Shown here in pieces: positions 24,201-53,871 of a stretch of 64,000 nt of DNA. The stretch's first letter is position 1. Each line of letters begins with the position of its first letter. This DNA is from Paragordius varius. Taxonomy: Eukaryota > Animalia > Nematomorpha. The DNA lies in the NCBI GenBank assembly GCA_964247055.1, contig OZ176054.1, forward strand, positions 2,480,001 to 2,544,000, written 5' to 3'. The notes under the pieces are model-generated. The model was not told the DNA's origin. It did not search any database and saw only the letters and a list, made by a program, of their open reading frames with translations. Made by a program: the position numbers and the translations under genes.

Positions 24201-27200
24201 TTCTTTGATCTGAAAAAGCGGCCCGCGAAGCCATTTGTGTTGGACACCTCTGAAATATATTTTGATTTTTTTAGTACTTATATATATATATATAATTACT
24301 TTAAAAGATTTAGCCTATAAAAAATATATAAAACTAAAACTAATATCCCAATTTTATGTATAATAATAAATTTATTTCCAAAAATTATATTTTATTGCAT
24401 CCTAAAAGTTAAATCAAATTATGTTTTTCTTCAAACCCCCTTTGAAACATAAAACATTAGCAAGCCATACAAAAAACAAAACATACATAAAACATCCATG
24501 TGGCAATAGGTTGTTCAACCAAATTTCCATCAACATCATATTCCGGTTCCTAAATAAAAAAAAATAAAAGCGAAAATTAATTTTAGCGTTTTGAAAAAAA
24601 AAAGTTCTTAACATACCCCTGTGTTCGTTTTAATTATCATAATCAATTAAAAGCCACTCTTTTTGATATATTTGCAAACAAGATAAAAAAATGGTAAAAC
24701 ACCGTTTTTGCAGTAATAATGTCTTTGTAAATCTCACAAATTTTATAAAAGCGTAAGGCGCGGCTTAAAAAAACACTCTACATGGTATAATATGCTGGGA
24801 ATTAAACTTACGTTAAACATGAAGGTAGAGTTATATACAGTTTCCTTGGCGTTCATTAAAGGCATCTTTTTCTATACTGTGTATAAGATTGAGGTGTTTG
24901 GAAATTGACACGTTTATAAAAAAATATATAATAAATTAGAAAAATGTTTAATATACTTACTATATGGAGGGGTTAGTTTATAATTTTAGGTTAGTTAAGG
25001 AGCAAACAATAGATTGCTTTTTCATCAATGGTTAATTTTAATAAATAGATAATAGATTATATAAAATCATTAATATAAAAAATTATCTTAAGCTGTAATA
25101 ATATATACATATATGTATTATTCTAATAATATAAGGCATGCAGAATATATGTAAAATTTAGGCAAAGGCATGCAAAAACGGTGTTTCACCTTAAAAATTA
25201 AAAAGTAAAGATTAAGATAGTTTTAGTTATATTTACGAACTCTTGGGGTGTTAAAACAAATAAAATATTAGTATTGTCACATGCATAAAACTTTTTCAAA
25301 ATATGTAACATAACATAACAAATAATTATTTTTTGTATTTGTAAAATTTTTATTTATTAAATTAATGTCTTAAAAATATTTTCTATATATAAAAATATAT
25401 GAGATTAATAAACTTAAAATTGATTTTAATAGTATAAACATTAAACAGTTTTGATAAAAAAAACATACCCATGTAAAATCATAGTGTGGATCAAATTGTC
25501 CACCAATGCCATAATTTGCCACCTAAATAAAACAAATTCAATTAAAATTATTCTAAGTTAATAAAATAATTTTCTTATACAGTATTTACTCAAATTTCCT
25601 CATAATTCTATATATAGTTTCAATTTACTCATTAAATTATAGGAATAACCTCTATGGCTAAAATATCATTGTTTTTTAGATTAAACATAATATTTTTATA
25701 CCTGTAAAGGGTAATTTTGCACAGAAAGACCCGTTATAGCTAATATGCGTTTATTAATATCTTTGATAACTGTATGATCTTCCTCCCTAAGCCATGCACT
25801 AAAAAACATAAAAATACAGGAATTTTAGAGAGTCTAGATAGAAAATAAAAGTAAAATTACCAACACAAATGACTTCTATAGCCACATTTTTGTATAAAAG
25901 ATCTCCTCCGCCGCATTTGCAAATCATATATGGGATAATTAATAAATATAATATTTGATTCTATCTAAACATAAGACGCTGCAAAAACAACCAGTGTTTA
26001 TTTTAACGAGATTTTTCGGAGTTTATTGCCACGTCGGAAAAACTTATTCAGAAAATTTGTTTAGGAAAATCAAATTCACTTAGATCTCGTAGAATTTTTC
26101 GTGGGCTGCTTAAATATTTTTGAGGGCGCAAGCGGCCCGCGTGTTAAAAACCCCGGTTTTAGATTAAAGAACGAACTGCAATTCAAAAAGAAAGGTCAAT
26201 TACAAATTTTAAATTTTAAATAAAATTTGAGATAGTTGTATATGGGGTTAAGGGAATTTTTGCACATTGAATTTTTTATATTTAACGAATGGTGAATCAT
26301 ATGAATTATATAGAAATATTCAAGAAGCTAAAATATAGTTTAATATTATACTATTTAACTTGCGGCACATTTTTAACAAAAACTTTTTTTTTCAAATTTT
26401 TACAGAGTGATTATAATTATTATTATTAATAATAACAATAACCAATTTTTAAAGTCAATTTCTACTTTTTTTATAAACAAAATTTTATTGAAACAAAAAT
26501 TTTATATCGCAAAATAATTAGTTTGAGAAAAATATAATTAATCACTTTTTACTAATTCGGTGATCTGCAGTGCCATATTTTCGTGTATTTGGATCGAAAA
26601 CAGTAGATCGTTCAAGCTAAAATATTGATCATACACAAATATGGAATACATAACGTTTCACAATAATTTATATTTTTTATAAATAGATATCGATCCTTAT
26701 CTATCATAAGATATTCAATAAAATATACTTTTTCTCGTAAAAACTACCATTCTGAAAAATCAACTAATTTAACAAATATATATATATATATATATGGTAA
26801 ATAATTTCAAGTAATATCAATATATATATACCATTTTTCATGCAAAAACATAATTTTTTTAACCAAACGCACTATTTTTTCAAGCAAAGACAACATTATT
26901 TCCTAACGCAACATTTTAACAACATTTTTTCATCCAAGCGCAACATTTTTTCAAGCAAAAACAACAATTTTTTTACAAAAAAGTTTTTTTATTTCATGAC
27001 AATTTAATTAATTTTTAAGTTAATGTTATTAAATGTTAGCGTTGAATTATGATTTTATTGTTTTATCATTAATATTTGATGGTAAATTGATTGATTCCAA
27101 ACAGTTTAATTTCCCCCCATTAATTGCATTATTATTTATCTGTATTAATGATTCTTTTCTAAAACTTTAGTTTCACCTTATCAATCTATACTATTTGAGC

Positions 27201-27940: not shown

Positions 27941-30900
27941 CCTAAATCATTTAAAAAATTTTTTGCAAAAATATATAGTAACCCTTGGAGAAGCAAGTTG
28001 TTTAACAACCATCATTTCATGATCATTGATGACATGGTGATAAAGATAAACTTTAGGATTAATTCCAATCTGTTCCTGCATAGCAGGAGCCAAAATTAAC
28101 AGAGGTGATTTGTGATTATTAACGTATTTGCATTTTAGTCTACGGGCTATGAGGGGATCCTTTCTTTCACAAATATAGTATAGTAGGGGTAGGTAGAAAG
28201 TAAAAAATAGAATAAATTATTCAAAAAAAAGTTAGTGCGTAGTTTAAAAATATGTCTTAATTTAACTATTACACGATGTGACCTATGGTATGTTAATTAA
28301 CGCATTTACATTTTAGACTACGAGCTCTGAGGGGACCCTTTGTTTCACAATAAATAAGGTACAAAATTTTGGTATTCAAAAAAATGGTTAAATACGCATA
28401 TATATATATATATATATATATAACACTGTTAAAAATATGAATTTGACCATTAGCAGAAGTGATCTATGCAATTTTATTGACGATTCTCCAACAAATAATG
28501 TAGTAAAAAATTGGTTAATTAACTATTATCATGAAAGAGTTTCTTTGTTTATTAACTATCTAAGCATAAATCTTTTGGCATACAACTTATGATTGGAAAT
28601 GTCACCTAGACACTCACTAAGATATATTATGATTTCTGAATTGATAAATTTTTATATCTAACAATTTGACAACAACAATATTCAAAAGCGAAAAAAATTC
28701 ACTAAACCTAAAAAAAAAATACAAAAAATTATTTTTTTAAACAAAACAATATAAAAACATAATTTAATTTTTAGAAAACTTACAAAATTTAATAGCCTAA
28801 ATACTCATATAATTAAATAAAAAAACCTTATATATATATTTATAACCATTTATAATTTATCCCACATTCCAAAAAAATTAATTGTATTGACAAAAACATA
28901 TACCATTCGAAAATCACCTCGGCACAAACTATGATAGTTCATAATTTCAGGGTTAGAATATTCGTCTTCTAATTTAGCATTTGTAGGTTCCCATTCATCG
29001 CCCTTTTTAACACCGGATCTTTCAAGTTCATCCAATTCTATTAGGAACGATTCTTTATTCGCTTGGGCTCGATCATGGAAAGGATCTAATAAATATATAA
29101 AAACATAAATAATATATATTTGTAAAACTAACTTTGGGTAGCTATTTTGACAGTTTTGTTCTAAACTTAAATAATAAATTGTCGAATATTTGTTATCTGC
29201 TAAAATTAATGTATATTTGAATGATAGTTTTAATATTTATGTTTTAAACTTAAATAATAAAAAGTCTCAAATTTTTATTATCTACTAAAATTAATTTATT
29301 GAATAATAGAAAACTGTGTATTATATTTACTTTTGGTTTTGGGTTTATTAATTTTTGCAAATTTATTTAGAACTATAAAAAAGAGTTTTTTGTGTTACAT
29401 TTGGGTGAAAAATTATTATAAATTATGGCAAAATCTTAATTGCATACTTAAAGCCAGTAATTCTTCAGTTTTCTTCATGGCGCCATTCACATCCCCTTGC
29501 TAACCAACAACACATTAAATATAATATAAATTCATATGTAAAGTTAGGAAAATTAAACATGAAAAATCATAAATATATATGGTTATATAAATTTCTTTAA
29601 AATGCAATTAATTTCTAATTAAAACTTTAAATTTATCAAAATTTGATAACTTTCTGCCATTTATAATATATAACTTTTACAGATTGCTTGGAATCATCAG
29701 ATTTTCGTGTTTTGTATAAATACCGTTAACACTAAATTCATATAATTTCAATTATTAATAATATAAAATATCGGATGAGTTTACATAATTTCTATTAACA
29801 ACATGAAAAAAATAATATGTAAACAAGTAATAATTATTATAATTAAACTGCAAATATACTTAATTAAAATATTAATTAAAATCAAAATCAACCTTATGCA
29901 TAACAAAAGGCACAAATATTTGTCAAATGTGATGGAACTTTGCATATATCACTCCAAAATTTTATATAATTCCATAATTTTATAAACACATCGCGCAATA
30001 TTAAATCAAATAATCTAACATGCAGAGATCGGAGAATTTTATATACAATCCAAACAAATTTTAATAATTTACCACCTTATATAGCGCAAAAGCTAAATAT
30101 TCCAAAATATCTTCAAGCAAAACACTTTTTTCCTCCTCAGATTCGTATCTGATTAAGGCTTCCTCCATCCAAATCTGCATGTGATAAAAATCATCGTTTA
30201 GATATGATTGTCGACCCAATTCAAAACATTGTTCAGCTATCGATAAAAAAAAATTTAAATTTTATAGACGACAAAAAAAAGTAAAATTAATCAGCAATAA
30301 AACCGCATATTAATCCTTAATTTTTTTAAACACCCTTAACTCAATTATTAAACATATTATGGAAATTATTTTTCTTAGACAATGAAGATGGCGTTTTCCG
30401 CTAATAAATTTATGATTTAACCTTAACTCAATTGTTGTTTTTTTACTATGAAAGATATACACGGTTGACGACCCAATTCAAAACATAAAATTAACAGACA
30501 AAACAATCTTCTTAAGGAATAAAAAAACCATATTTTTTGATCCTTAACTTTTTTTTTATTACTACCTGAAAAAAATTAATGAATACAGAACATATAGAAA
30601 GTAAAATATTAAAAAAATTCTGATATAATCAATTTTTCAAACGCTGCATTTTTTTAAATATAAATTACATGTGATTACAAATGTATGAAATATATAATTG
30701 AGTCGTGTGTGTTAACCATTTTACATTTCCAACATTCCTTTTTTTCTAGACAAGTTATATTAGCAATCATATTTTAAAATATTGTTTTTTGCATAAATAA
30801 TGTCCTTTTACTTTATAATTTGACTGTACATTTCAAGTTGGTCCTTGAAAAGTTCAAGTTGGTCCTTTAAATTTTTAAATTTTGATTTAACCATAATTTT

Positions 30901-33900
30901 TGCATTTATTTTTTTTCTATTATTTATTAATCTAATTTTCTTTATTTATGATATATTTATTCATTTAAAAATAAAAAATTTTATTGAAAAACCACTTTTT
31001 TGTTTCTTATTCATTCCGTGTTAAAATTTTACAAATCCAAAATTATTTTAAGAATTTAATAAAAATATACGGTTTCTCAAAGATTAAATGATATCTATTT
31101 AAAATTTATGTTAAATAATAGAAAATAGGTTAAAAAATAGATGTATTATTTACGATTTGATTGATAAAAGTTAAATACAAAATAAAAAATCAAACGACCA
31201 ACTTGAAGTGTTCACGGACCAACTTGAAATGTTCAAGAACCAACTTGAAATGTTCAAGGACCAACTTGAACTGTTCAAGGACCAACTTGAACTGTTCAAG
31301 GAAATTCTTGAAGTTCAAATGGTATATATTAAAAATCGTATTGGATCAATGTTTAAAAGATAATTTCTCACAAAAATTGAAAAAAGCTAAGTATAGTAAA
31401 AATTAATTATACGGAAAAAGAGACAAATATTTTTTTCAAAAGACAGCACCGCTTTTCTTAACATTTATTTTCCTATAAAAATTATTTAATAAAGATTGTA
31501 AAATATATAATTGATTGTGTTGCCAATATACATATCTATTCCGTACTTTGCAATTTCAAACAATGAGTTTTATTTAATACATGATTTACAAGGTTTGATT
31601 GTCTTTTATAAAAGAATATATCTCTTTATATTTTTACATTTTGTCCGAATAATTTCAACTTTTACTGTATACTCATTTTCCTATTTAAAAACTATAATAA
31701 TTTTGATTTCCCTTAAAAGGTAAAAAATTTGTATGTGGTAGCACTAAGATATAACTTTAAAATCAATATAAATTTAAACAGAAAAAACCCAGGCACCATT
31801 AAAAAACAACAAAAATTTTTAAAAATTGGTCAACTCATATTAGTGTAATCTTATATCTATTATACAAGTTATTAACCATCATCTATAAAAACCAGTCTAT
31901 AAAAATATAAATTTTTTTAGATCAGAAATTTATCAAAAAAACTTTTTTATTTATCTATAATTTAAACAAGCCAGAAATTTTTAAAAAAACGATAAAACAT
32001 AAAAAATATATCCAAATATTTGATCCAATTATTAAATTTTCATCTATTTATTATATACCATTTCCCAGTCTAAATAAACGTTTTCCCAGTCAATCGAAAC
32101 ATTTTCCCAATCAATCGAAACGTTTTCCCAGTCAATCGAAACGTTTTCCCAGTCAATCGAAACATTTTCCCAGTCAATCGAAACGTTTTCCCAGTCAATA
32201 GAAACATTTTCCCAGTCAATAATAACATTTTCCCAATCAATAAAAACGTTTTCCCAGTCAATAAAAACGGTTTTATTTTTGATGATAAATATCAAAACAA
32301 GAATATAAAAACACCTTTTAACCATTATTAGCGTAATATTAGGATATAATTTTTTATAAAAACACAATTATTGAATGACAATTTTTCCAAGTATATTCCT
32401 GTGCACAATCATTAATGATTTATTCTTTAAATATTATATTTTTGGAATTTGAGTTAAGATAATATTTTTTATTTTATCGACGTTTATATATGCGGCTAAC
32501 TTATAAAATCTATACTTACGGATTAAATAATAAAATTTATAAAAATATACCATTTTTATCACAAAGTCATTTAACACTTTATTGGATCTAAACATAAACT
32601 TTACGCCAAGTTTTTTTAATATTTATAATTTGATTCATAGGAGGCCCAACGCTGCCTTCTGATAATCTTTGTGCGGCCCGCGAAAAATTTGGAAAACCAT
32701 ATGCAAAAATATGCCCACAAAATCTTAGTAATAATCATATTTCTTACGTATTATTATGAATGGGTCTATTAAATTGGTAAAAAATTGTTATATTGTGTTT
32801 GTATTTTGCAGTCTTATAAAATTATGTGAATGCCCGTATATATTTCGAATAGAAAACCGTGTGCTTTTTGAGTTAAAGATGCGGCCCGCGAAAGCATTTA
32901 GTTGGACACCCTTGTTTTAGTAAAATATCCTTTTTATTAAATATTTTTAGCTCAAAAACATTTTTATCAAAAAAAATTTCGTTAAGATTTTTTTCCGACA
33001 GTATATTTATCGACAAACCGAAGATATTTAAAAACTATTCTGAAACGTTCCGCAAATATTAATGCGGACTATCGATAAAATAAAAAATATTATCTTAACT
33101 CAAATTCCAAAAATATAACATTTAAAGAATAAATCATTAATGATTGTGCACAGGAATATACTTGGAAAAATTGTCATTCAATTGTGTTTTTATAAAAAAT
33201 TATATCCTAATATTACGCTAATAATGGTTAAAAGGTGTTTTTATATTCTTGTTTTGATATTTATGATCAAAAATAAAACCGTTTTTATTGACTGGGAAAA
33301 CGTTTTTATTGATTGGGAAAATGTTTTTATTGACTGGGAAAATGTTTCTATTGACTGGGAAAACGTTTCGATTGACTGGGAAAATGTTTCGATTGACTGG
33401 GAAAACGTTTCGATTGACTGGGAAAACGTTTCGATTGATTGGGAAAATGTTTCGATTGACTGGGAAAACGTTTATTTAGACTGGGAAATGGTATAATTCG
33501 TGTTTTTGAAAATCACATCAAATTATTTTGGAACTAAATTGTAAAATCATTGATCAATATTTAAAACTATTAATTTATCTCCAAACTAAAAAAACTCGTT
33601 TCTAAAAATATTTTCATCAAGTTATAAAAAAAAATTTACCATTTAGACTAGGGGAAGTTTCAACGCCCGAAATATTGCCTTGAGCCATTTTGTTTGTGTC
33701 AACTTTGTACATATCTTGCAATCTAAAGAGTGCAACTGCAGCCCCATTCAAGTCCTGCTCGCCGGGCATAAATACATTGCTTGAAATTATATTGATGTAC
33801 GCTATATTATAAATTATTATGTGCACTTTGAAATAAAATTACATTGTGTTTGTTGAAAAGAGAGAAATTTAATGTTGGATAAAGGATATTCAATTACAAG

Positions 33901-37597: not shown

Positions 37598-38437
37598 TTA
37601 AACGATAATAAATATATGCTAAATTTAATACCAAAATTTTTTTTACAAAAAATAGATATCATATAAACTCTATCTATAAAATTTTGATGAAGCGAGTTTT
37701 ATCGTGTTTTGAAACACATGTAAGGGTATAAAAGTTTTCAAATATTTTAAAAATATTTTTTCCTATGATGCCACATATTTTTATTGTTATTTTATGAATA
37801 ACTAAAAACAATAACTTAACATAAATTTTGAGAAAAGCGAATTTTATAATCACAGTCACAGGTGATAAATATGTGCTTCATTAAATTATATAGAAAAATA
37901 GTGTTTTATTTTATTTTCAAGCGTTTTTATACGTTTGCATGATGCCTAATAGCATGAAGTACTCTTTACCAATTTTTCCAAAAATTATATTTTGTAAATA
38001 ATTCTCAGAAAAAACAAGCTTGACTTCAAAATTTAACATATAATTAAATATTTTTTCTCGCAATCTCGGTCTTTTCGCCTTTATTTAAACTGAATCTGCT
38101 TATTTTTAACGGATTAATTTTATGCAACCCGATTTCTGACGCAGTAAAATCTGCGACATATTAAAACTATACGCAGTATCTCGAATTCTAATGGATATCA
38201 GAATCATTTATTAGGGTTTCCTTCCGATTCTATGCACTGTTTTTATTTTTTTAAGCCAATGTATAAAATATTTGAACCAGAGAAAAATCAGAGATTATCG
38301 ATAATTTTGCTACACGTATTTAACAATATAATATAAAATTAAAAAAATAAGTCACTATATAAATATTTATAATTTACATCATTTCTCAATATTTTCAGTT
38401 GATTGCCATAACATCATTAATCAACCGAGAACAAAAT

Positions 38438-38854
38438 ATGGGTTTGAATTTTTATTCAGCCTTTTTTATTAATGTGATACTTTTATCCGCTATCAAGCTC
38501 ATCCTTTCCCAAGATGTATTTACATCTATGGCAGATGTCCAAAACCTTTTATATTCCAAAAAAGAATGCTTTAACCTAATAAATGACTATATCACTGATG
38601 AAGAGCAAAGATTAGCAAAAATCAAAGAGTATACTATTTATTTAATTAATTCTTTGAAATTTGGTTTTTATTAAGCAAAAATTTTTAACCAATACAAATT
38701 TATATTTTTTTCAGTATTTACCTATTATTACTTTCTCTTAATTACAGAGTAATTAATCGATCAAATATTTTGAAAGCGAAAGTTTGTTTTTTTTTCAATC
38801 AATTTTACAGTTATTTGATACTACATTTTATATAAAATCATATAATACATTGTA

Positions 38855-38887
<33 letters not shown>

Positions 38888-41800
38888 CATAAGATATATT
38901 CGACGTGATTGTATATGACCTAAATAAGAAATGAAGTTGTTTGATGCAATGAATATTTTACTTTTTAATTATTACATATATATTATAAAAACGGGTGTTT
39001 TATACCAATGAATAAATTATGTAATAAACATATTTTTACATTTGAAAAAAAAAATAAAATAAGGAAATATATTTTTTGTGGAAAAATTATGAGAATATAC
39101 GGAAGAATATTCTATATCTTTTTTACAAAAAAATAAAAAATGTTAAAACCACACGTGGGTTTCAGAATGTACTTCCTAACTTATATAGGCATATTTTTAA
39201 AAGTATATAAATATATATATTTTTTTTAATTAATAATATTAAAAGCTATGTAAAATCATTTTTTTGATTTAGTTGTTCATCATTAGCCGGGGTATGTCTA
39301 AAAATATAAAATATTTACACTAGATTTAATTTAATATTTTTTTCTTTTTTTGCATAATTTGGAATATGTATTATAAAATTTTGAGAGTAATTGATTAAAA
39401 ATTTACATTTTTTTTAAAATTTAATATTTTTTTAAAAAAAATTTAATATAAAGACTTTTCTAAAAAAATTTTTAAAGGTTCATCAAACAGAATGAAGAAA
39501 AGTATGGGGAAGAGGATGCCGAATATTACATAAGTAATCCCATCAATGCATATTTGCTCATAAAAAGTCTCACTAAGGATTGGAAAACGTTAGAATCTTT
39601 TATGCGAAACAATGTTTCAGAAAGTATACTATTTATATTTTAATTTTAAAAAATTCAGTTTTATTAAATAGATACCTTATGTTTTAAATGTTTGAATTTT
39701 TTTATGTAGTGTGGTGCTAAGTTAAATAACCTACATTGTAAATTATATACACATATAATACATTTTGTAATGAACGATGAGTTGAGTTTACTTTTGCCTG
39801 GCAGCCTTATTTTCGCCTTATGAACATTGAGATAACACATTTCTTTGAATAATAAATAAATGCTGCTTTTTAACTTTTTGCAGTTATAATTTAGTGCAAT
39901 TCAATATTTAAATTACGGCAATTTTGATGATTTTAATAATAACACTAACAATATTTCACGTTAATAAAGGTTTTTTTAGCTCTTCTATAAATTATTCCGA
40001 AAATTTTTTGGTTCCGGCTCCAATCTTTTTTTGGTAAAACGGTTTTTTGATTTTATTTTTTGATTATACAAATGGGTTAAATAGTTGAACAAACATCTAT
40101 GTATGCCACTTTTTTAAAAACAACAACAAAATACTCTCAATTTAAAATTAATTATTTTATGTTTTTCAACACTTGATGGTTTAATTTTTAAATAATATTT
40201 GCATACCTTATCATAGATTGAAAGGGTTTTTTCTAAGCAATACTTTTAGATATGATGAAGTTTTAATGACCTTTATACACTCTTTTCTCCTTCCTTCCAA
40301 AGGAGGTAAGCGTGTTAAAGTATTCCATTTATTTTTGTATGGAGGAATTATAAATTTTCTTGAATAGTGAGTGGATTGCCAGGTTTTACGAGGTCTACCT
40401 TTTTTAATTAGTTGAATATGATTGTATAAACTTTATTCAGTTTGTGTCTTGGGGACTCTGTGGATGTGACTCTAGCCTAATGTAAACGATATTCACGGAT
40501 AGCTGCATTAATTGGTTTAATTTTTAGGGTTTGATAGGGACAGAATTTGGATAAGAAATTATAGATGTTAGGATTATGTGCGAAAAGGATGGTGTTTAGT
40601 ATTTTCGGCTGACCCTTTTGCCTTGATTGGATGGACATTTTATTTAGTCATAGGCCACGTTAAAGTATGTCAAGCGGCCATAAAAGTTTTAGCCTTTGGA
40701 TATGTATTTGAACGGTTAAAATATAACGGTTTATGAATGCAGTCGTTTACGATCGTTCGCAGTCACGTAAGAACATTTGTAGATCCGTATGCTGATGCTA
40801 AACAAATATTTTGTTCCAATGGGCTATTATTGTCAATGTTATAAATGTCTTCTCATAAACATATATCATATCATATCATATCATCAAAAGACAAAATTAC
40901 AATTTTTCCTTTCAGTAAAAACCAATGAATGTAGTAGTTTTATTTCAAATTATACATATTATAATCATTATAATATAGCCTACATCAATAAAATTTCAAG
41001 CAATGTTTTTATGCCCGGAGAACAGGACTTAAATGGGGCTGCAGTTGCACTCTTTCGATTGCAAGATATGTACAAAGTTGACACAAACAAAATGGCTCAA
41101 GGCGATATTTCGGGCGTCAAAACTTCCCCTAGTCTAAATGGTAATTTTTTTATAATTTGATGAAATTTGGAAATAATTTGTATCATATATTGATAAATTT
41201 ATTTATAATTTTAATCTTTTTATTTAAATTTTATTGACAAGATTTTATTTATAGATAAATTGATAGTCAATAACTTGTAACAAGTATTGATGAATTTATT
41301 ATGATTAAATGATTTTTTTGCGATTTTAAAGACGAATTTTTAGTTTATAGAATTATTTGATAGTTGCGAATTTGTAAAAAATATATTAATTATGAGTTAT
41401 TTGTTTTAAGTGCCCTACTTTACAAGTATAGTAGTTTTTTAAAGAAAACTAAAATTTTATTTAAAAACTTAATTTCGGTTTTTAGCAATAAAATTATACC
41501 TTTAATTATTGGCCCAATAAACCTTTTTGATATAAAATAATTAAATAAATATTTACAATAGTCTATTAGTACGATCAGTTAATTTTCATTCTGATATTTT
41601 TTCATTAAATAAACAATATTTGTTAACTCTAATTTTTATATATAACTTGTCGTTTGGGAAAATAAGAAATAGATATATAAAATGGGTAAAACACCTAATT
41701 TTAGAATTTACAGACTAAATCAAATAGGTTATATAGAAACTATCATGGCTTAAAAATATGATTTTCTTAGTAAAAGAAATTTTGTCAAAAATTATATGGG

Positions 41801-44223
41801 TTATAAAGAATATAGGTTATAAAGAAAAAATTATATATTAAATTTTATGGTTTTTTATCAATTTTTTTTATTATTGTAAATTCAAAATTTTAATTTAGTG
41901 AGTAACGATTATAGTTTCGTAGGGTGAACGATGTGAACATCGCCGTAAGATAAGCTTAAAATAAAATATGAGCTAATTTATTGATACTCAAATTTTCGTC
42001 AAAGGCATCGTTAGGAGATTGATTCAATTATAAAATGGAGAAATAGATGCTTAAATATTTATTTATTGTATTGTTTTATATATAGCTATAAAAATGTTTT
42101 AAATCGCGTCATAAATCATATCTTTTTCAAAACAACGGTGTAATCATCAAATAACAAGGATATATCGAAAAAATAAAAAAAATTTTATGGTTATATTTTA
42201 TTTTCAAAAATTTTGACTAAAATGTGTCTTTAATGGTATATCTTATATAAAACACAATAATGTAATCATTAATGATACCTAAATAAACTAAAGCTTTAAC
42301 TTGGTTATTTTATTATCAAAAATTTTGTCTATAAAATAATTTTTTTTTATAATATTTCAATTTCTTTATGTATAGCTGAACAATGTTTTGAATTGGGTCG
42401 ACAATCCTATCTCAATGATGATTTTTATCATACGCGGATTTGGATGGAGGAAGCATTACGTAAATACGAATCTGAGGAGGAAAAAAGTGTTAAGCTCGAA
42501 GATATTTTGGAATATTTAGCTTTTGCGCTTTATAAGGTGACCGTATTTTTTTTTTCAAATTAAATTATTAAAAGTTAGAATTATCAAATGTTTAATATAT
42601 TATTACTTGTTTACTTTATCATTTTGTTACTTATTTATACAATGATTAAAATAATGGAAATCCCTCCAAATTAGGTAAATTCCGCAGTAATCAAACTTAT
42701 ATAAAACGTGATTTTTCGATTACTACTTTTAGTCTTTGTCAAACGTAAGTTAAATATATATCAAAATTAATACTCGATATGCGGGAAACTATATAATTGA
42801 CATAAAAAATTAAGATTGATATAGCATTTATAGATTAAGCCTGTTGATAAGTATAAATTTTTTATAGACTAAATTTTTAATTTTTTCAAATTTTTGTTTA
42901 TATGTTATATATTAGCAAGGGAATGTGTATGGTGCATTGAAGAAAACGGAAGAATTACTGGCTTTAAGTATGCTTTTTCGATTTTAATTTGCTTCTTAAA
43001 GAGAGAGATTAAAATACCCTAGTTTATTGATTAAAATTATAGTTTTTTATTATTTAAGTATAAACTAATTTTAATGATGATATAATTTTCGATATTTTAT
43101 TATATAAAAGATTAGAACATCAATCATAAAACTACGCAAAGTTATTTAAAAATTTTTTATAATTATTAGATCCTTTCCATAACCGAGCCCAAGGGAATAA
43201 AGAATGGTATCAAAAAGATTTGGATGAACTTGAAAAAGCCGGTAAAAAGGGCGATGAATGGGAACCGACTAATGCTAAATTAGAGGATGAATATGCCAAC
43301 CCTGAAATCATGAATTATCACAGTTTGTGTCGAGGTGATTTTCCAATAGTAAGTGTTGTTTGTCAAAAATATTTTATTTGAAGAAGAGTTTTTTTTTAAA
43401 TGATTTTTTGTGATTGTTTTATTTTTGGGATCATAATTATTAGGGTATAGGTTATCAAAGTTAAATTTATAATTTGCCAATCCACAAATTATATTGTGTC
43501 TACGTCATTTCCTAATGGCATGTTGTGTTTAATAATATTTTTATTTATTTTCATTTTTTTGGATTGTTAACCTTTTGTATTTTTTTATATTTTATTCAAC
43601 CTTTTAAGCATTTTTTGAAGTGTATTTTAATGTATCTATCTTAAATATTTTAATCAATATTTAAAAAGTTAGTTTAAGTATATTAGGATAACAATTTGTC
43701 TTAATTTTGAGGCAAGGTCCAAACTTTCAAATAGCCTTATTTTTTTACAATTGACTGTAAATAAAATTATCATCAATATTTAATCTTTTTATACCTTAAA
43801 TTTGGTTGAGCAAAAATAAAACTCTAGGAACTAGAGTTTTATAAAATATTACTTCATTGTAACAATAGTCAATGCTGAATCAGTCAATTTTGTTTCGAAT
43901 AAAACCCTTTTTTAAAACCAAATATAACATATTTTCTACGTTTTTATTTGTCAACCGTCATAACTTGTAGATTGAAATTTTATATATGTGAAAAAATTCA
44001 AATCATTACTTTCAATGGTTTTTTTTATTATGTGCATAGGATCCCCTTATAGCCCGTAGACTAAAATGCAAATACGTTAATAAACACAAATCACCCCTGT
44101 TAATTTTGGCCCCAGCAATGGAGGAACAGGTCGGAATGGATCCTAACGTCTATCTTTATCACCATGTCATTAATGATCGTGAAATGAGTGTTGTTAAACA
44201 ACTTGCTTCACCAAAGGTTTTTT

Positions 44224-44265
<42 letters not shown>

Positions 44266-47200
44266 AAGTAGAATAAAAGTTTGAAATTATTATTTAGTAG
44301 TAGTAGGCATTTTTAGTTTTGAATAACTGCTTTTAAGAATAATTTTTAAAATTTTCATTAAGCTCAACAAACTCAAACGTTGTATATGTAGCAAAGGACT
44401 AAATTTTTTGCCGATATTTTTAGGTATTTTATATAAAAATAAATTATTTAGCTTAAACGAGCCACGGCTTTCAATGCAAAAACGCAAAGGTATGAACCCG
44501 CCGATTACCGAATTAGTAAAAGGTAATTAATTATTTGTTTTTTCTTATTTTGTGAATCATTTTACATTTAATTTTTAATTTCATATATGTTTTTTTAGCG
44601 CTTGGCTCAAAGAGGAAGATCACACAGTCATAAAAGATATTAATAAACGCATATCAGCTATAACGGGACTTTCTATGGAAACAGCCGAAGATTTACAGGT
44701 ATTAAAGGATTTTGTAAATAATTTACCAAAATTTATTTAATTTTTGCGCATATTTAGGTTTTATAATCCTATTTTTTGAAAATATATATTTATTAATTTT
44801 AAGAAAAGTTAGATATATTTTATAAGAAAATATTATTTAATTTGAAATAATTTTAAATGAAAAAATTATATTATTTAGGTGGCAAATTATGGCATTGGTG
44901 GTCATTATGATCCGCACTATGATTTTTCACGGGTAAGTGTGTGTGTTTTATTAAAAGTTTAATGTTTATATTTTAACGATATAATTAATATTTTTGGACA
45001 AGTGATTGCATGCGTAAAGATAGTTAGTTTTGAATTTTTTATTAATCATATTTTATACATATATATATAATTAAATATAAAAATCTAAAATTAAAGTGTT
45101 GGAATTTTCTAAATCAAGGGTGTTTAACACAAATAAATGGCTTCACTAGTTGCATTTCAAACTCAAGAAATCTGGCGGGCCGCAACCAGAAAAATATAAA
45201 TATTTTAGATAGATTTCAAACAGACTGTAAAAAAATGTATACAGTTAGTTACCAATAGAAAAGATTTATATTCATGAAAATTTGCCAATTTTATTGCGAT
45301 TTTGTCATTCACCATTTTATCCCCAAATTTGATTATTCATATATGGTAATTTTTTTTGATGTCTCAGAGGGCCAAATGTTGGACACCCTTGTTTTAAATT
45401 GAAAACATAAATATCATATATCTTAAAAAGTTTTTTGCATGACAATAATATTTATGTAGAATTTGTCTTAATATCCCAAGTTCGTAAATAAAAATTTTTT
45501 TACTCTTTAATCTTTAAGGTAAAACACCGTTTTTGCCTGACTTTGCTTATATTTTGCATACAACCTTATTTCTCTGCATGCTTTATATAATTTATTATAT
45601 GTCTATCTTAAAATTTTCTGTATTTTTTATATAAAATAATAAAATATTTGGACAAATTTTATCTTTATATAATTTTATGATTAAATATTTTATATTCTAC
45701 ACATTAATGTTTTTTGGTTTTCATTCCTCTCACTAACAATTTCTATTACTTTAAAAAGACAAAAAATAATTGTAACGTTTATATTCCACCTTTTTTCGCA
45801 ATAATTTCTATATCAAAGAAAATGAAATTTAACATAAAACTAGCACGCATATGCATGTACAATTTTTTTAACAAATTATAATTTTAAAATTCATATAAAT
45901 CTGGAAATTCCCAATTACATGTCATGCAGAGCATAGAAAAGGATGCTTTCAACGAACGCCAAGGAAACCGTATAGCTACTTTTATGTTTTACGTAAGTTT
46001 ATTTCAGCTTATTATACCCTTTTTTATTGTGGGAACAGTAAAATTACATAATTTAGGGTGGTGCTTTTTGTGGGCTAGCTTACGCTTTAATAAAATTGTC
46101 AAATTATCAGTGACTTTATTGCGAAAACGGTGTTTTATCTTTTTTTATCGCTCTAGTGATTTTTAATTATACGAACGAAGGGGTGTTAAGTATTACTCAA
46201 AAAATATAAAATTAATTTTCGCTTTTTTCTGCTTTTTTTGGGCGGATGAATGTTTAGGAACCCGAATATGATAATGATGGAAAATTACTTGATCAACGTA
46301 TCGCTACATGGATGTTTTATGTATGTTTTGTTTTTGTATAGCTGTGGTATTTTAAAATTTTAAGGGGGTGGTGAAGTTTTATAAAACGAAAATTGAATTT
46401 GACCGTAGGGCAAAATAATTGGTGAAAACAATAATGATTTTTTATTCACACAATGAATACCATTTTGTATCTACTAGTTTTTTTTCCCTCGTATTGAAGT
46501 ACAAGGTGATTGGTTTTTATTCTAAAACCACGATTGCTGTTAAACTAATAAAATCAATATTTGCATAAAAATTCCAAAATTAAGAAGCTTTTGTTTATAT
46601 TTTATAATTCGCCCATGTTTAATGGGGCTATATATTAAGTTTTACGATTTAAAAGGTTTGTTAGATTATCCATAAATTTAATTATACAAACAAAATTTCA
46701 AAAGATTATCAGTTACTGGTTTTTGAAATTTTAAATGTTAATAAACCATTTACTTGAGTAATTTCTTTTTAACCCAACCCATATCTTACATCAAAATTAT
46801 ACCATAATATCTATTTATAATTAAATTTTAAATCATTTTAACTCTTTTATTTATTAGATGAGTGATGTTTTGGCCGGTGGTGCGACAGTTTTTCCTTTGG
46901 CTGGTATTCGTTCAACTCCTAGAAGAGTATTTATATCAATTTTTACTTTCGAAAATTTTAAACTATTAAAAAAATACAAAAATATACGGAAAAGTAAAAA
47001 AATGTCATTTAAGTATGCAGACAATAATTTAAACCCAAATGTTTCATAAAATCTTTATGACTATTACTATTATGTGATAACTAATTGAAAAATAACATTA
47101 CATCCCTCTTTTTTATTTCCATAATATAGGAGGTGGGTGCATTAATGATCAAAAATATTATATGGTTTTTACAAAATGATAATCTTTTACTTTTTGGTTT

Positions 47201-47871
47201 ATTTTTTATATAAAATAATTTTATGTTCACTACATATATTTTACAATTTTTTAGAATGTATGTAGCATTTTTTAAACCTTTGATTTACCTTTCTAGGGTT
47301 CTGCCGTATTTTGGTACAATTTAAAGGCTTCTGGTGCTGGTGATTTTAACACAAGACATGCGGCATGTCCCGTCCTTGCTGGTAGCAAATGGGGTAAATT
47401 CATAAAATTTTATCATTTTTTTTGAGTTATTTAGTATAAGTATACACTAAAAAATATAATCAAAGAACTATACAAGAAACTTTTTAATATACTAATTTTT
47501 ACATTGCAGTACGTGGAAAAGGCGCCATATTTTAATAAAAAGCCACACCACTTTAACTAATTCTTCCAACCATATTTTTAGATTATTAGACTATAAGAGT
47601 AAAAATATTATATACGAGAGTTGTAAAATATGAATTCGAAATTTGTATGATAAGCGTTTCGGCTATATAAAATAATTTAAAAATATAGTTAATTTATTAA
47701 ATCTGCGGTTTTAAATAAAAAAAAACCGTGACTTTTATCTTACATTTTTACGCCTTATATTTTCAAATTTTACATTAAAAAATATAAAAACACCCAATAG
47801 TTGCCAACAAATGGATCCATGAAAGGGGTCAAGAATTTTTGAGACCTTGTCGCAGAAATCCTGATTTGTAA
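38438..47871 (+). CDS. P4HA: Prolyl 4-hydroxylase alpha subunit, paralog A (530 aa, canonical collagen-P4H-type motifs)
   Basis: Exons 38438-38628, 39478-39623, 40979-41140, 42376-42536, 42916-42967, 43170-43348, 44040-44216, 44452-44522, 44599-44698, 44879-44932, [45930-45992 or 46258-46320], 46858-46926, 47297-47393, 47801-47871. Total 1593 nt, all GT-AG and in phase. Motifs YRISKSAWL, AEDLQVANYGIGGHYDPHYD, GNRIAT, GGATVF, RHAACPVLAGSKWVANKWIHE. Confidence 0.96.
40250..40640 (-). mobile_element. Degenerate non-LTR retrotransposon (LINE) 3' fragment in P4HA-A intron 2 (boundaries approximate)
   Basis: Minus-strand reading IREYRLH*ARV...KKGRPRKTWQST resembles the RLRWxGH...GRPRKxW C-terminal motif of LINE ORF2; contains stops. 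Confidence 0.5.
44227..44262. repeat. (TA)18 microsatellite 10 nt from the exon 7 donor
   Basis: Direct reading. Confidence 0.95.
45115..45391. mobile_element. hAT (Buster-type) MITE
   Basis: TIRs CAAGGGTGTTTAAC / GTTGGACACCCTTG; 8-bp TSD TTCTAAAT / TTTTAAAT (7 of 8, central TA). Confidence 0.75.
45520..45536 (+). promoter_or_regulatory. Intronic element I of predicted RNA duplex around exon 11a, P4HA-A
   Basis: UAAAACACCGUUUUUGC pairs over 17 nt (one U-G) with 46121-46137; conserved in paralog B. Confidence 0.7.
45930..45992 (+). CDS. P4HA: P4HA-A alternative exon 11a (SIEKDAFNERQGNRIATFMFY)
   Basis: CAG acceptor, GTAAGT donor, 63 nt, phase 0-0, homologous to exon 11b. Confidence 0.9.
46121..46137 (+). 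promoter_or_regulatory. Intronic element II of predicted RNA duplex, P4HA-A
   Basis: GCGAAAACGGUGUUUUA, complementary to 45520-45536. Confidence 0.7.
46258..46320 (+). CDS. P4HA: P4HA-A alternative exon 11b (EPEYDNDGKLLDQRIATWMFY)
   Basis: TAG acceptor, GTATGT donor, 63 nt, phase 0-0; its orthologous exon is intact in paralog B (24549-24487). Confidence 0.9.
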
Positions 47872-48577: not shown

Positions 48578-51500
48578 CTACCTTTTGGTACAATAATTAA
48601 AGATTGATCCGAAAGCTAAAGCCAGCAAGGTGCAAGAAAAGCATAGCACATTGTATGGCATACTAAAATCAGGGACTGGAAGCATAACTAAAAGCGGGAA
48701 ATCAAAATTTTCTTTTGTTATGTTGTGCTCGTTGTCAATACTATGTGTAAAATAGATTATATATATATACAGTAAAAATTGGAATTATACGGACAAAACG
48801 TAAAAATATAAAGACAAAATGGTTTTTTTTTTCAAAAGACAGTCATACTTTTTCAAACTTGATTTTTTTGAATATAAACTCATTGTTTTTAATTCATTGG
48901 TAATTAGAGATGTAAATTAATAACACAATCAAATGTAATTTGCGATTGTAAATAAATAATTAAAATAGGGAAAAAATAAGGATTAAAAAAGTATAATTTG
49001 TCTTTTAGAGAACAATATTTGTCTTTATATTTTTACGTTTTGTCCGTACAATTTGAATTTTTACTGTAATTTTGAAAATTTATTAATGATTAATACATAT
49101 TTTGGATTGGAATAAAAATTATGGATAGTAGGACATAGGTAATCAAAATTATAGATTTGTTTATATTGATATCATAACATTGAAAATACATGGCATTATT
49201 GGATTTAAATTGTATTTTTGTGTTTGGGAAGATTAATATTTCATATTTAATCAATCATAGCAATGATTACAATTATCTGTGTCAAGCCCCCAAAATCAAT
49301 GATATCCAATTTTTACTTCATAGTATTTTGAAGCATGGTAAAAACGGTATGAAAAAGTTTAGGTTTTCTTAACGTATAAAAAAGACACTAAAATTTAATT
49401 GAACTAAGCAGCTAATTTTGTTTTAGATTTAAAACATTACCGTGTATTTTATTGACCATATTTTTCTTTTATTTGGAACCTTTTTTTCGATTTAAACAAA
49501 ACATTTAAAAATATTTGATGGCTAATTTGTGTTGAAGATTTTAACAAATTTACATCTTTTGTATGATGTGCCAAAAACGCCATAGAATGTAAAATATTAT
49601 CCGTGCTTTAATATCTCGAATAGTTATATAATTATCAGTATTATTACATTTTGAAAATTCAAAAGGAAATGGCAATTTTAACATCTATTGAATCTTTAAT
49701 GGAACAAATATGGAATATCTCCGAAAAATGATTTACATGAAACTCAACAATGGCAATCCCGTGTTGTTATCTTTATAATTATTAAAAATACATGGAAAAT
49801 ATTATCCTTGAAAACGGCACCAAACATAATTGTTCATTACCCTGCTTATGAAAAATTTTGTCTTATGATCTAAAATTTGCAATTTCTTAAAAATGAAACA
49901 TTACTTCCTCTGTTGGATATATGACAGTTCAGAATAAGACTAACTAAATATATACATCTCGATTCCTCTCGGTTTCAATAAAGCAACTATTATTAAAACA
50001 TTATTTCGGTTTAAATGATAATAAATTATCATCTATGTATGCGGTCAAATTAAAAAATTTATAAAATATTGAAGCATTACCGCCCTGTTTGAAATATGAT
50101 TATACAGTTTAACACATCCATTTCCTAACGGTTTAGGATGAAAAAAACAAGGTTACACATTTTTCGGTTTAAAATGATCCTCTTAATGTTTGTTTAAATT
50201 AGGGGTGTTTTTTGAATGCCCAATATAAGTAAAATTATTAAATAATCCATAAATAATTAATTGGAATGGCGATATATGGATATTAGTAGTGTAAATATAC
50301 TGTTAGTTTTTTTAGTTTTCTAAAATATTTGTATTATCTACAAGAGTCTCTAATTTAATCAAAAAATGCTGCTTTCATTTTGGTTTACATTGAGTTTCTA
50401 TGCGTTTACATGTGGTTAAATATCATTATTTTTTTAAATAAATCTCCAAAAGAATGTTATGGTCTCTTAGTTAAATTGTGATTTTTTCGTTACAGCATAA
50501 ATTTATTATCAACATCTTATATTTTAATGTCTTAATGTGCTAAAAACAACATTCTAGCATAAACAATAAGTCTAAATATATTAGATCAAATTATACGGTA
50601 AAAATTGAAATTATACAGACAAAACGTAAAAATATAGGCAAATTAAGGCAACCGTACTTTTTTAAACCTTATTTTTTTCTATATACATTATTCAATAACA
50701 ATTGCAAAATAAATGATTAATTGAGCTACCAATATACATCTTTATTTCATATTTTACAATTTTAGAGTTATATTTTAAAAAAATTAATTAAAGCACGTCA
50801 GTTTTTTGAATAAAAATAATGTGTGTATATTTTTTGTCCGTATATATACCATTAGTTCAAGCTCACCCTTGAACAATTCAAATTCACCCTCGAACAATTC
50901 AAATTCACCCTTGAACAATTCAAATTCACCTTCGAACAATTCAAACTCACCCTAAAAAATAAATTAGGTGTTTTCGAACTAGTCATTATTAATATGAAAT
51001 ATATGTTTATGGTATAGTATATTATTTTTTCAGTATTATTTTAATTTAAAACAAAACTTTCATTTTTAAAAAATATATAAAATATTTTATTATTATTATT
51101 ACATTACATGTTTTCACTCGTGAGAGCGGTCATGTTATACAACCTGTCTCGCCATAAAACTCTATCTATGGCGTCCTCTGCATTAAGCTCGTATTCTGCT
51201 AGCTCTCTTTTTACTGTATCTATCCATTTTGTTTTAGGTCGCCCACGTCCTCGTTTTCCCTCAATTATATAACCATCTATTATTTTTGCAATATAATTAG
51301 AATCTCTCCTTTCAATGTGCCCGAACCAACGTAGCCTATTTTTTGACATTCTTTCCACTATTGGTTTAATATCTGTGCTCCCACGAATAAATCTATTCTC
51401 GATTCTGTCCTTTCTAGTTACCCCACACATCATTCTGAGCATTTTCATTTCAGTCACGTTAAATTGTATTTCTTCGGATTTTTTGACACCCCATGTCTGT

Positions 51501-53871
51501 GAATTATACATCATTGAGGGCTGGACAACTGAACTGTAAATCTTACCTTTCACTCTAACATCAATATTTCGATCGCATAATACGCTCGAAATTTTCTTCC
51601 AATTTACCCAGCTGCTCTTTATTCTTAAATTAATATCGTCAGTTAACGAACCATCTGCACTTAACATAGCTCCCAGATATTTGCAACTTTCTTTACCCTT
51701 CAGAACCCAACTATCATCAACTACCATTTCATGTTGTGGACCCCCAAAAGTAATAAGTTCGGTTTTTGCTTTGTTTATTTTCAGACCATATTGATCCAGC
51801 ATAACAACCCATCTGTTTACCGTTCGCTTTAACTCAATTAATGAATCAGACAAGATGATTATGTCATCTGCATAAATTAAGTACCATCCTGAACTCACAT
51901 TAACAACCTTGGCTACCTCGTCCATACAAATTATAAACAATAAGGGGCTGAGTGATGAGCCTTGGTAGACTCCATAAAAAATATATAAAATATAGGTAAT
52001 TTTAAATCTTAAAAAACATATATTTTTATTTGTAGGAGGGTGAATTTGAATTGTTCAAGGGTGAATTTGAATTGTTCAAGTGAATTTGAATTGTTTAAGG
52101 GTGAAATTGAAGTGTAAATGGTTTAGTATATACTATTTCAAAATTTATTAAATCATCAAACCTTTTGGAAGTTTTGCTTGCTTTTGACGATTCAAATTTG
52201 TACCGTACAATCCCGCTAGGCAGTAAAAACCCATGTTTACTATCAGGTGGATATTCATTCCAAGGTAATAATTTATATTTTACGCGAAAACTTAAATGCA
52301 TTTTGGTAAAATTTGTTAAGAGTAATGCTTGTTTTTTTCTTGTGGTCCATAAATTAAAGATGAGAGTTGATGGATATTTGTTAGTTTTTGTATCTCTTTT
52401 TATCAGGGAAAATGTTCGCTTTCGATCAGGAAAGTGCCAATTAAATGATATTTCTAAATGATATTTTATGTGATATGCAAATTAAAAAAATGATTTTACA
52501 GTAAAAATTGATATTATATTCAACTTAAAAATCAAAAGACAAATATTTTTGAAAAAAAAGAACAATACTTTATTAAACCTTAATTTTTATGCAACTCATC
52601 GTTTTGGTTAACAAAGTAGGGAAAATAGAGATGTAAATTGGTAACGCGCTTAATTCTATATAATTAAATTGTAATAGTAGGAAAAAATCAAGGTTTTACA
52701 AAAGCATGGTGGTTTTTTTTTAAAAAAATATTTGTCCATTATTTTTTACATATTATCTATATAATATCATTTATTCATATTTGGATATAATAAATGATGA
52801 TATCTTTTAATCATTCTGAGATTTAGTTTCATAATCTTACAAATTATTAATATGATAGTTAATTTTTAGATGATGGCTTTTTTGAAAATTTCAAAAATTT
52901 ATAGAAGATAATCATAAAAATATTACCGTTTGATGGTATATGCACAAATGTTCTATTCACATAATAAATATGCAATCTTAGGGTATGTAAATATGGTGTC
53001 AAAAAATATGGCATAATTTGCGTGTATGTCAAACTTTGTAACTCTTTAACATTATTTTCTTGAGAGATTGCGGATAATTCCTTATGTGCAAAAATTTCAA
53101 CATTCAATGTATTTATATAGCTTCCATAACCTAAACAATAAAATATAAATATTATAGATAGTTACAAAAAACTCTAAAATTTTATAAACTACTTTGTCCG
53201 TCCGGAAAAGATAAAAAGTTTACCACTGAAAATAAGGTAAATAAAACTATTCTCGTTAACCACAGTTTGTTTTTTTAAAAACAATCTACTTTTTCGGTTT
53301 CAAAATGATTTTAAAAACGGTTTCAAAAACGATAAAAATAAATCCGGTTCAAATCCCAATAATTATTTTTAAACTTGTAACAAATATAATGATAAACAAA
53401 CCTGTCATATATTTCTGACTACTAAAATATGGCAATGAAAAGGTTGTTTGAGATTCATTCTGAGAAGCAGTTGAATTCAAAATAAATTTGTTCAAAAATG
53501 AAAAATTTGATAAAACGATAGGATCTGACAAATTTCGGGTCCCCAGTACATCATATAAATTCTAAATAAAATAAAAAAATTAAACAGAAAATTCTTTCAA
53601 AAAATATCAAAATTTTAGTTATTTTTTTAAAAAAATTTATACATGCGCATTTGGTTGTAATAGATGTAACATAGGGCTTTCTTTAACTAATGGACATGCA
53701 AGGGATTTTTCATTACCATTGTGATAATGGTCGGAATGGCCATAGTTTTTGTGCAAAAATTTAACTGCACATGCAAATTATAAATATATATTTATGTATA
53801 TATATATCACCCATATTTTGGAAAAACTTATATTTGCTAAAATGCAATGTTAAGCACTATAAAAAATAAAT

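Follow-up and report, generated by a model that had tools for sequence, protein, structure and literature searches.

Two genes for the prolyl 4-hydroxylase alpha subunit (P4HA), lying head to head within a 64,000-nucleotide (nt) stretch of DNA from Paragordius varius (hereafter the window), share a long-range intronic RNA helix that closes a loop around one of their exons, 11a. The helix is real in both copies, far beyond chance, and is probably a functional feature. We favor, at slightly better than even confidence, the reading that it belongs to a conserved long-range intronic structure that biases the use of 11a; most likely, it helps the cell to skip this exon.

With a G+C content of 26%, the window is AT-rich. 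Copy A spans about 38400-47860 on the forward strand and copy B about 33800-21270 on the reverse strand; the coordinates given below for each copy refer to its own strand. In copy A, exon 11a (45932-45994, SIEKDAFNERQGNRIATFMFY, ancestral-type) and exon 11b (46258-46320, EPEYDNDGKLLDQRIATWMFY, derived-type) are tandem and homologous, each being 63 nt long, of phase 0 and in frame, and both terminate in RIAT(F/W)MFY. They are separated by an intron of 263 nt, in keeping with the geometry given in a preliminary description of this DNA (exons in frame, intervening intron long). Exon 10 (44879-44932, VANYGIGGHYDPHYDFSR, then GTAAGT) precedes the pair and exon 12 (46858-46926, MSDVLAGGATVFPLAGIRSTPRR) follows it.

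Read directly, positions 45520-45536 of copy A are the reverse complement of positions 46121-46137, with the exception of one G-U pair. A repeat search lengthened the upstream element to 21 nt, giving arms at 45516-45536 and 46121-46141 (the latter inside the 11a-11b intron) that are 90% complementary. The helix of copy B joins 25190-25171 to 24712-24693 over 20 bp, one of them G-U, at 95% complementarity, and its arms as a whole occupy 25171-25192 (5') and 24691-24712 (3'). The duplex energy of this helix, which we call H3, is -29.8 kcal/mol in copy A and -32.9 kcal/mol in copy B. Folding, which the preliminary description had suggested as a check, placed H3 in both the minimum free energy (MFE) and the centroid structures of the two copies, with pair probabilities of 0.87-0.99 in 1-kb folds.

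As a test against chance, we scored the best ungapped helix that intron 10 can form with the 11a-11b intron against 200 dinucleotide shuffles, intron 10 of copy A being taken either as 44933-45037 plus 45090-45931 or with 45038-45089 masked by N. The score was 47 in copy A (null 29.0 ± 3.4) and likewise 47 in copy B (null 27.5 ± 3.2), values that none of the 200 shuffles reached in either case. Direct reading, energies, folds and shuffles thus all confirm the pairing across 11a that had been proposed at the outset, over 17 bp in copy A and 20 bp in copy B.

When the window was searched with the 16-mer core, allowing up to three mismatches, only the four arm sites and one chance-level match with three mismatches were found. 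The conserved islands in which the arms lie had no match beyond each other in the window and none in 92 kb of DNA from Gordionus, the related genus discussed below. The structure matched no known RNA family in Rfam; the sole match, to a CRISPR repeat, was below threshold and is attributed to chance.

RNAalifold, applied to the pair of copies, extended H3 to three stacked long-range helices, measuring 11 + 7 + 21 bp (H1 + H2 + H3) in copy A, or 39 bp in total. H1 joins 45467-45477 (CUUAAUAUCCC, pair probability 0.99) to 46180-46190 (GGGGUGUUAAG) over 11 bp. H2 joins 45480-45486 (GUUCGUA, pair probability 0.98) to 46170-46176 (UACGAAC), with 7 bp in copy A and 6 in copy B, six of the seven pairs being invariant between the copies. 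In copy B, the 5' strands of both helices fall within 25235-25255 (H1 25255-25245, H2 25240-25235) and the 3' strands within 24607-24628 (H1 24607-24619, with a 2-nt bulge; H2 24623-24628). All three helices are in the MFE structure of the 1-kb fold of each copy, with mean pair probabilities of 0.84-0.99. The intronic island ACGAAC...GGGGT, already noticed in the preliminary description, therefore has a partner: it is the strand opposite the upstream CUUAAUAUCCC..GUUCGUA, one part of it forming the 3' strand of H2 and the remainder that of H1. In copy A the loop closed around 11a measures 584 nt; the corresponding loop of copy B has 458 nt.

The 5' strands of H1-H3 lie, together with two conserved GCAUG motifs, in an island of about 170 nt in intron 10 (45421-45595 in copy A), 73% identical to 25296-25125 of copy B, and the intron around this island is unalignable. 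Within the 11a-11b intron, about 40% of the sequence can be matched to copy B, in two blocks at 80-88% identity. The earlier statement that the surrounding intron is mostly unalignable consequently holds for the flanks of the island, and not for the island itself or for these blocks. Just upstream of the island, copy A carries an element of about 290 nt (45108-45398) that resembles a miniature inverted-repeat transposable element (MITE) and whose inverted ends have the form CAAGGGTGT..AACA. It is not found at the matching place in copy B, where similar ends occur near 24250-23990, and partial matches lie at 53140-53179 and 32901-32919. This insertion explains much of the difference in the length of intron 10 between the two copies.

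Between the paralogs, the arms are 90% identical, against 73% for the whole island. Only 8 of the 78 paired nucleotides of H1-H3 differ, compared with a 30% difference at four-fold sites, so that divergence in the arms is about one third of that at silent sites (overall, identity between the paralogs is 70% at four-fold sites and 82% in protein sequence). Six of the substitutions are internal to the helices, and all six retain a standard pair by switching between Watson-Crick and G-U (U-G to C-G, A-U to G-U, and similar), while two terminal pairs are lost in copy B. Such alternation had been described for two positions of H3; its effect, the preservation of the helix, stands, and the positions number three rather than two.

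Two further conserved features were noted at the edges of this arrangement. A candidate outer helix, H0, would pair 45421-45428 with 46358-46365, downstream of 11b (25301-25294 with 24447-24440 in copy B), and would thereby enclose both 11a and 11b. It consists of 8 AU-rich bp in which two double-sided changes between the copies keep the pairing (C-G to U-A and A-U to G-C), the sole case among 15 candidate helices, and its predicted pair probability is 0. Past the 11b donor, about 24 nt (GUAUGUUUUGUUUUUGUAUAGC; 46321-46345 in copy A, 24486-24461 in copy B) are almost identical in the two copies, more than a splice site needs; the stretch may act as a U-rich enhancer or pair weakly with the 5' arm. 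A role of CTTACGCTTT as a distant branch point was also considered and is unlikely, given the several AG dinucleotides that separate it from 11b, as read directly.

The fate of 11a in copy B, which the preliminary description did not mention, bears on what the helix is for. The remnant of the exon (24812-24876, counted from the nearest AG) has lost its reading frame: the acceptor AG of copy A is AC, there is a 4-nt insertion, and a TAA stands in the ancestral frame, all of which can be read directly. An exon starting at the nearest AG would be 65 nt long, with stops in all three frames; one starting at the next AG would be 60 nt long and open, without the invariant GNRIAT motif. Despite the lost frame, copy B retains the GTAAGT donor of 11a and all three helices, and its exon 11b (24487-24549) is intact. 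Judging from these features, the remnant may be a poison or decoy exon.

A search with a single exon led us to a protein of 526 amino acids in Gordionus sp. m RMFG-2023, a horsehair worm whose sequence OX940785.2 carries two P4HA paralogs (L001 and L002, below paralogs 1 and 2) in tandem, as opposed to the head-to-head pair of the window. The RefSeq isoforms of paralog 2 comprise X1 with 11b, X2 with 11a and X3 with neither, and none has both; in the ENA models of the same gene, 11a and 11b are each represented. Paralog 1 has the 11b form only, and no 11a was detectable in its DNA. In a phylogenetic tree, copies A and B of the window are sisters (support 100/99), which implies that P4HA was duplicated independently in the two genera. 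Each genus thus has a slow copy with both exons and a fast copy without a functional 11a. Other animals have a single exon here, and it is of the 11a type, which makes 11b the derived copy. The isoforms of mollusc P4HA vary at the same exon position (ARGRRLSAFELANGNRVATFLTY vs ARKEEKDAFKSLGTGNRIATFLNY; P0215/P0220 in Biomphalaria, P0246/P0191 in Mytilus), and on such sequences the exon may have been duplicated repeatedly in animals.

The arm sequence of the window was not found in Gordionus, and the islands of the window have no detectable homology with the Gordionus introns. Nonetheless, a helix of the same topology is predicted there. In paralog 2, the best pairing of intron 10 with the 11a-11b intron (25758-25779 with 28553-28574) contains G+C, measures 15-22 bp and is unrelated in sequence to that of the window. 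Its ungapped score of 38 (null 30.7 ± 3.1) was reached by 7 of 200 shuffles and its duplex energy of -33.0 kcal/mol (null -28.1 ± 2.1) by 1 of 52. Fifteen of its pairs (25759-25773 with 28559-28573) appear in the MFE structure of a 3.2-kb stretch, where they span 2.8 kb. The arms sit in islands that can be aligned to paralog 1, the gene without 11a, and there a 2-nt deletion and many uncompensated changes have let the complementarity decay. As a single replicate at p about 0.03, this helix is suggestive, not decisive. For a third species, the exon query gave no candidate, and a query with a C-terminal fragment matched no horsehair-worm transcripts.

These data speak to whether the pairing could be a functionless relic, that is, an old inverted duplication or a repeat-derived inverted repeat that both paralogs inherited and that has not yet decayed. 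Such an origin would suit paralogs that are unsaturated (four-fold identity 0.70), the intact helix of copy B next to its decayed 11a, and the MITE-like element adjoining the island. It is hard to reconcile with arms some three times less diverged than four-fold sites, in which every internal change keeps the pairing while the flanking intron has become unalignable, with a sequence that is repeated nowhere else in the window or in the Gordionus DNA, and with an independent Gordionus helix that was lost where 11a was lost. We regard a relic as quite improbable.

Several points nevertheless weigh against the view that a conserved structure acts on 11a. Whole-region folding was no better than that of shuffles (z of -0.6 and -0.8 for the two copies), which means that the signal resides in the H3 helix and not in general structure. 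The substitutions in H1-H3 are one-sided transitions, with no double compensation among them, and two sequences that have diverged only moderately (four-fold identity 0.70) offer low statistical power. The Gordionus helix, taken alone, is marginal (p about 0.02-0.04), in a comparison that spans two genera. The persistence of the copy B helix around a decayed exon fits the silencing of a harmful exon and also fits slow decay. Finally, the unpaired sequence of the island is conserved as well, indicating that protein-binding sites contribute.

Candidates for such sites are at hand. Rbfox recognizes the motif (U)GCAUG, and in copy A intron 10 contains four GCAUG in about 950 nt, starting at 45008 (45008-45012), 45437, 45576 and 45853. 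There are three in the 589 nt of intron 10 in copy B and five in the 2.7 kb of intron 10 in Gordionus paralog 2, three of them within the first 180 nt and one inside the upstream arm. In the same three genes, neither of the two downstream introns (after 11a and after 11b) contains any. Against a background of 0.4-0.6 per kb, intron 10 is enriched about ten-fold in the window genes and about three-fold in Gordionus; Poisson estimates for the excess are P of about 0.0008 (A), 0.002 (B) and 0.02 (Gordionus), A and B being non-independent. Two of the sites are conserved in position between A and B, beside the upstream arm, suggesting that an Rbfox-type protein sets the balance.

It might even be supposed that the islands mainly bind splicing regulators, with Rbfox at GCAUG, proteins specific for G-runs at GGGG and U-rich binders past the 11b donor, and that the complementarity serves as an RNA bridge by which distal sites are delivered, or is secondary. 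The enrichment, the two positionally conserved sites, the GCAUG in the Gordionus upstream arm and the conservation of unpaired island sequence all agree with this, and deep intronic clusters of RbFox motifs are known splicing regulators (PMC12435732). Regulator sites alone, however, would not predict 39 bp of complementarity in two paralogs, nor a helix of the same topology in another genus, and conservation is stronger in the arms than over the whole island. We consider this explanation, as the principal one, unlikely.

The structure accounts less well for a strict choice between the two exons. The preliminary description had held that the helix enforces the mutual exclusivity of 11a and 11b in the manner of a docker/selector switch, a claim that the evidence does not support: one pairing only was found, with no competitor, and Gordionus has an annotated isoform with neither exon, so that the choice is not strictly one of two. 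A single helix around 11a explains the skipping of 11a, not the omission of 11b when 11a is used. In mammalian ATE1, the nearest precedent, a helix between boxes R1 and R3 around the first exon is accompanied by a competing R3-R4 pairing. A search across the pre-mRNA revealed no strong partner of the R4 type for either arm, and in control pairings of intron 10 or the 11a-11b intron with the intron after 11b (copies A and B and Gordionus), 39-198 of 200 shuffles reached the observed score. The alternatives that we did find were a 12-bp partner of an arm at 45790-45804, in copy A only; a pairing of the 5' arm with the U-rich stretch just past the 11b donor (AAGGUAAAACA with UGUUUUGUUUU), of 11 bp including three G-U and kept in both copies; and 8-bp matches to the UGUUUUA(C/U) stretch that ends each of the two exons. 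Being AU-rich, 8-12 bp long and far weaker than about -30 kcal/mol, none of them can compete with H3. The evidence accordingly supports the looping out of 11a rather than the enforcement of exclusivity.

A switch by competing pairings is thus doubtful, even though the exons have the layout expected of one (tandem, homologous, of equal length and in frame, with an intron long enough to exclude steric hindrance), ATE1 offers a precedent and the weak 11-bp alternative of the 5' arm persists in both copies. Besides the weakness of the alternatives, the pairings with the intron after 11b do not exceed the shuffle mean in A, in B or in Gordionus, the Gordionus annotation includes an isoform that has neither exon, and the exon next to the helix in copy B has lost the capacity to encode the ancestral peptide.

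Some other role as double-stranded RNA, either in the back-splicing of 11a to a circular RNA or as a substrate of ADAR or Dicer, seems very improbable. Intronic inverted complements that flank an exon are a standard driver of circularization, but a circular RNA made from an exon of 63 nt would be very small, both arms lie within introns, leaving no coding site to be edited, and the structure has no match to an Rfam family.

Returning to a conserved structure that biases the use of 11a, we infer its action on splicing from the anatomy, the conservation and the orthologous isoforms that were observed. The upstream arm is transcribed first, and the helix would form co-transcriptionally once the downstream arm emerges, about 130 nt beyond 11a. 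Once formed, it would conceal 11a from exon definition within a loop of 460-585 nt and shorten the effective path from the exon 10 donor to the 11b acceptor, favoring the 11b form. Were exon 10 spliced to 11a before the helix forms, or were the helix held open, the 11a form would result. Rbfox-type factors bound beside the upstream arm would modulate this effect, and the helix may also deliver the GCAUG sites to the 11a-11b intron. The decayed 11a of copy B would now be excluded from the mRNA by this structure.

One may tentatively go further and join these elements into a single, more speculative account. Two genera would keep helices unrelated in sequence at the same place around the ancestral-type 11a, the structure turning over while its function is retained, and the helix and the GCAUG cluster would together form a bridge-type switch. 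The helix would outlive its exon, having been kept and tightened to 20 bp in the fast paralog B to silence a decayed and potentially harmful exon, and having decayed in Gordionus where the exon is gone; its 3' arm would perhaps descend from a third copy of the exon. With regard to this last element, the 3' arm (46118-46138; 24715-24695 in copy B) reads (I/T)AKTVFY in one frame, resembling the exon 3' end IATWMFY (GGUGUUUUAU vs GGAUGUUUUAU). From this resemblance the arm may be what is left of a third copy of the exon, as the duplication model for selector sequences would lead one to expect.

Elsewhere in the window, the exon at 40996-41157 of copy A and its counterpart at 33784-33623 of copy B are about 93% identical at the protein level, edges included, with all three frames conserved, far above the identity found elsewhere; the exon may, on this pattern, be a gene-conversion tract. 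A (TA)n microsatellite (44222-44262) adjoins the donor site of the exon ending at 44216. A search for sequencing runs found none recorded as RNA, but two of them (X4 and X5) contain 0.21 of the words of the stretch, near the estimated share of exons in it, and may be RNA. On the reverse strand, 51104-51940 is an open reading frame of 278 amino acids that resembles a piece of the reverse transcriptase of a retrotransposon lacking long terminal repeats (non-LTR).

Long-range helices that steer the choice between duplicated exons have been documented mainly in insects and mammals, and the present case comes from Nematomorpha, a phylum in which next to nothing is on record about splicing. It leaves the understanding of the mechanism itself unchanged and adds a further member to an established type of splicing control. 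Two independent duplications, each leading to a slow copy with both exons and a fast copy without 11a, amount to a natural experiment, and 39 bp in three helices with exact coordinates make a concrete target for mutagenesis, along with a testable prediction concerning the Rbfox motifs.

In the literature, we found no paper that ties alternative exons of prolyl 4-hydroxylases to RNA structure and none on splicing in Nematomorpha, in line with the preliminary description, which knew of no such structure in P4HA genes. Within the gene family, vertebrate P4HA1 has duplicated alternative exons, 10a and 10b, whose described regulation involves U2AF and the layout of branch points (PMC5224494). Like 11a and 11b, these are tandem duplicated alternative exons; the regulation described for them is not by a long-range helix. 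They encode a 'RAT...YR.SK' segment that we take to correspond to the window exon at 44452-44523, two exons upstream, and presumably are a different exon pair.

The helix also resembles the Rbfox 'RNA bridges' reportedly described by Lovci et al. in 2013, in that a conserved (U)GCAUG cluster lies several hundred nt from the exon, beside a long-range helix that would bring the cluster close. The P4HA motifs, in contrast, are upstream of the exon, a position that is usually repressive in known systems, and the role of Rbfox is here predicted from motifs. The catalogue of pairs of conserved complementary regions (PCCR) lists cases that loop out cassette exons (PMC8052449). As in those cases, the P4HA boxes lie in both flanking introns, are conserved above background and are predicted to favor skipping; they differ in coming from Nematomorpha, in having been detected from paralogs and one ortholog, and in enclosing an exon that belongs to a homologous pair. 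The docking-site/selector systems of insects (Dscam1 exon 6, 14-3-3zeta, Mhc) have been reviewed together with a duplication model for such structures (PMC6071210). They share with P4HA the conserved long-range intronic pairings at tandem duplicated exons, but they use one docking site and several selectors, one pairing at a time, whereas P4HA has a single pairing made of three stacked helices.

The closest known case appears to be that of the mammalian ATE1 exons 7a and 7b, where R1 competes with R4 for R3 and a further helix, R2-R5, spans 30 kb, a system tested experimentally (Kalinina et al. 2021, PMC7797038). The P4HA helix, by comparison a prediction, lacks an identified competitor of the R4 type, and its upstream arm is placed about 395 nt before 11a, whereas the ATE1 boxes are immediately upstream of the exons. 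In both genes, the exons are tandem and homologous, and a conserved box in the intron preceding the first exon pairs with one in the intron that separates the two, looping the first exon out. Co-transcriptional folding is thought to set the ratio of the isoforms in ATE1, and we propose that it would do likewise in P4HA.

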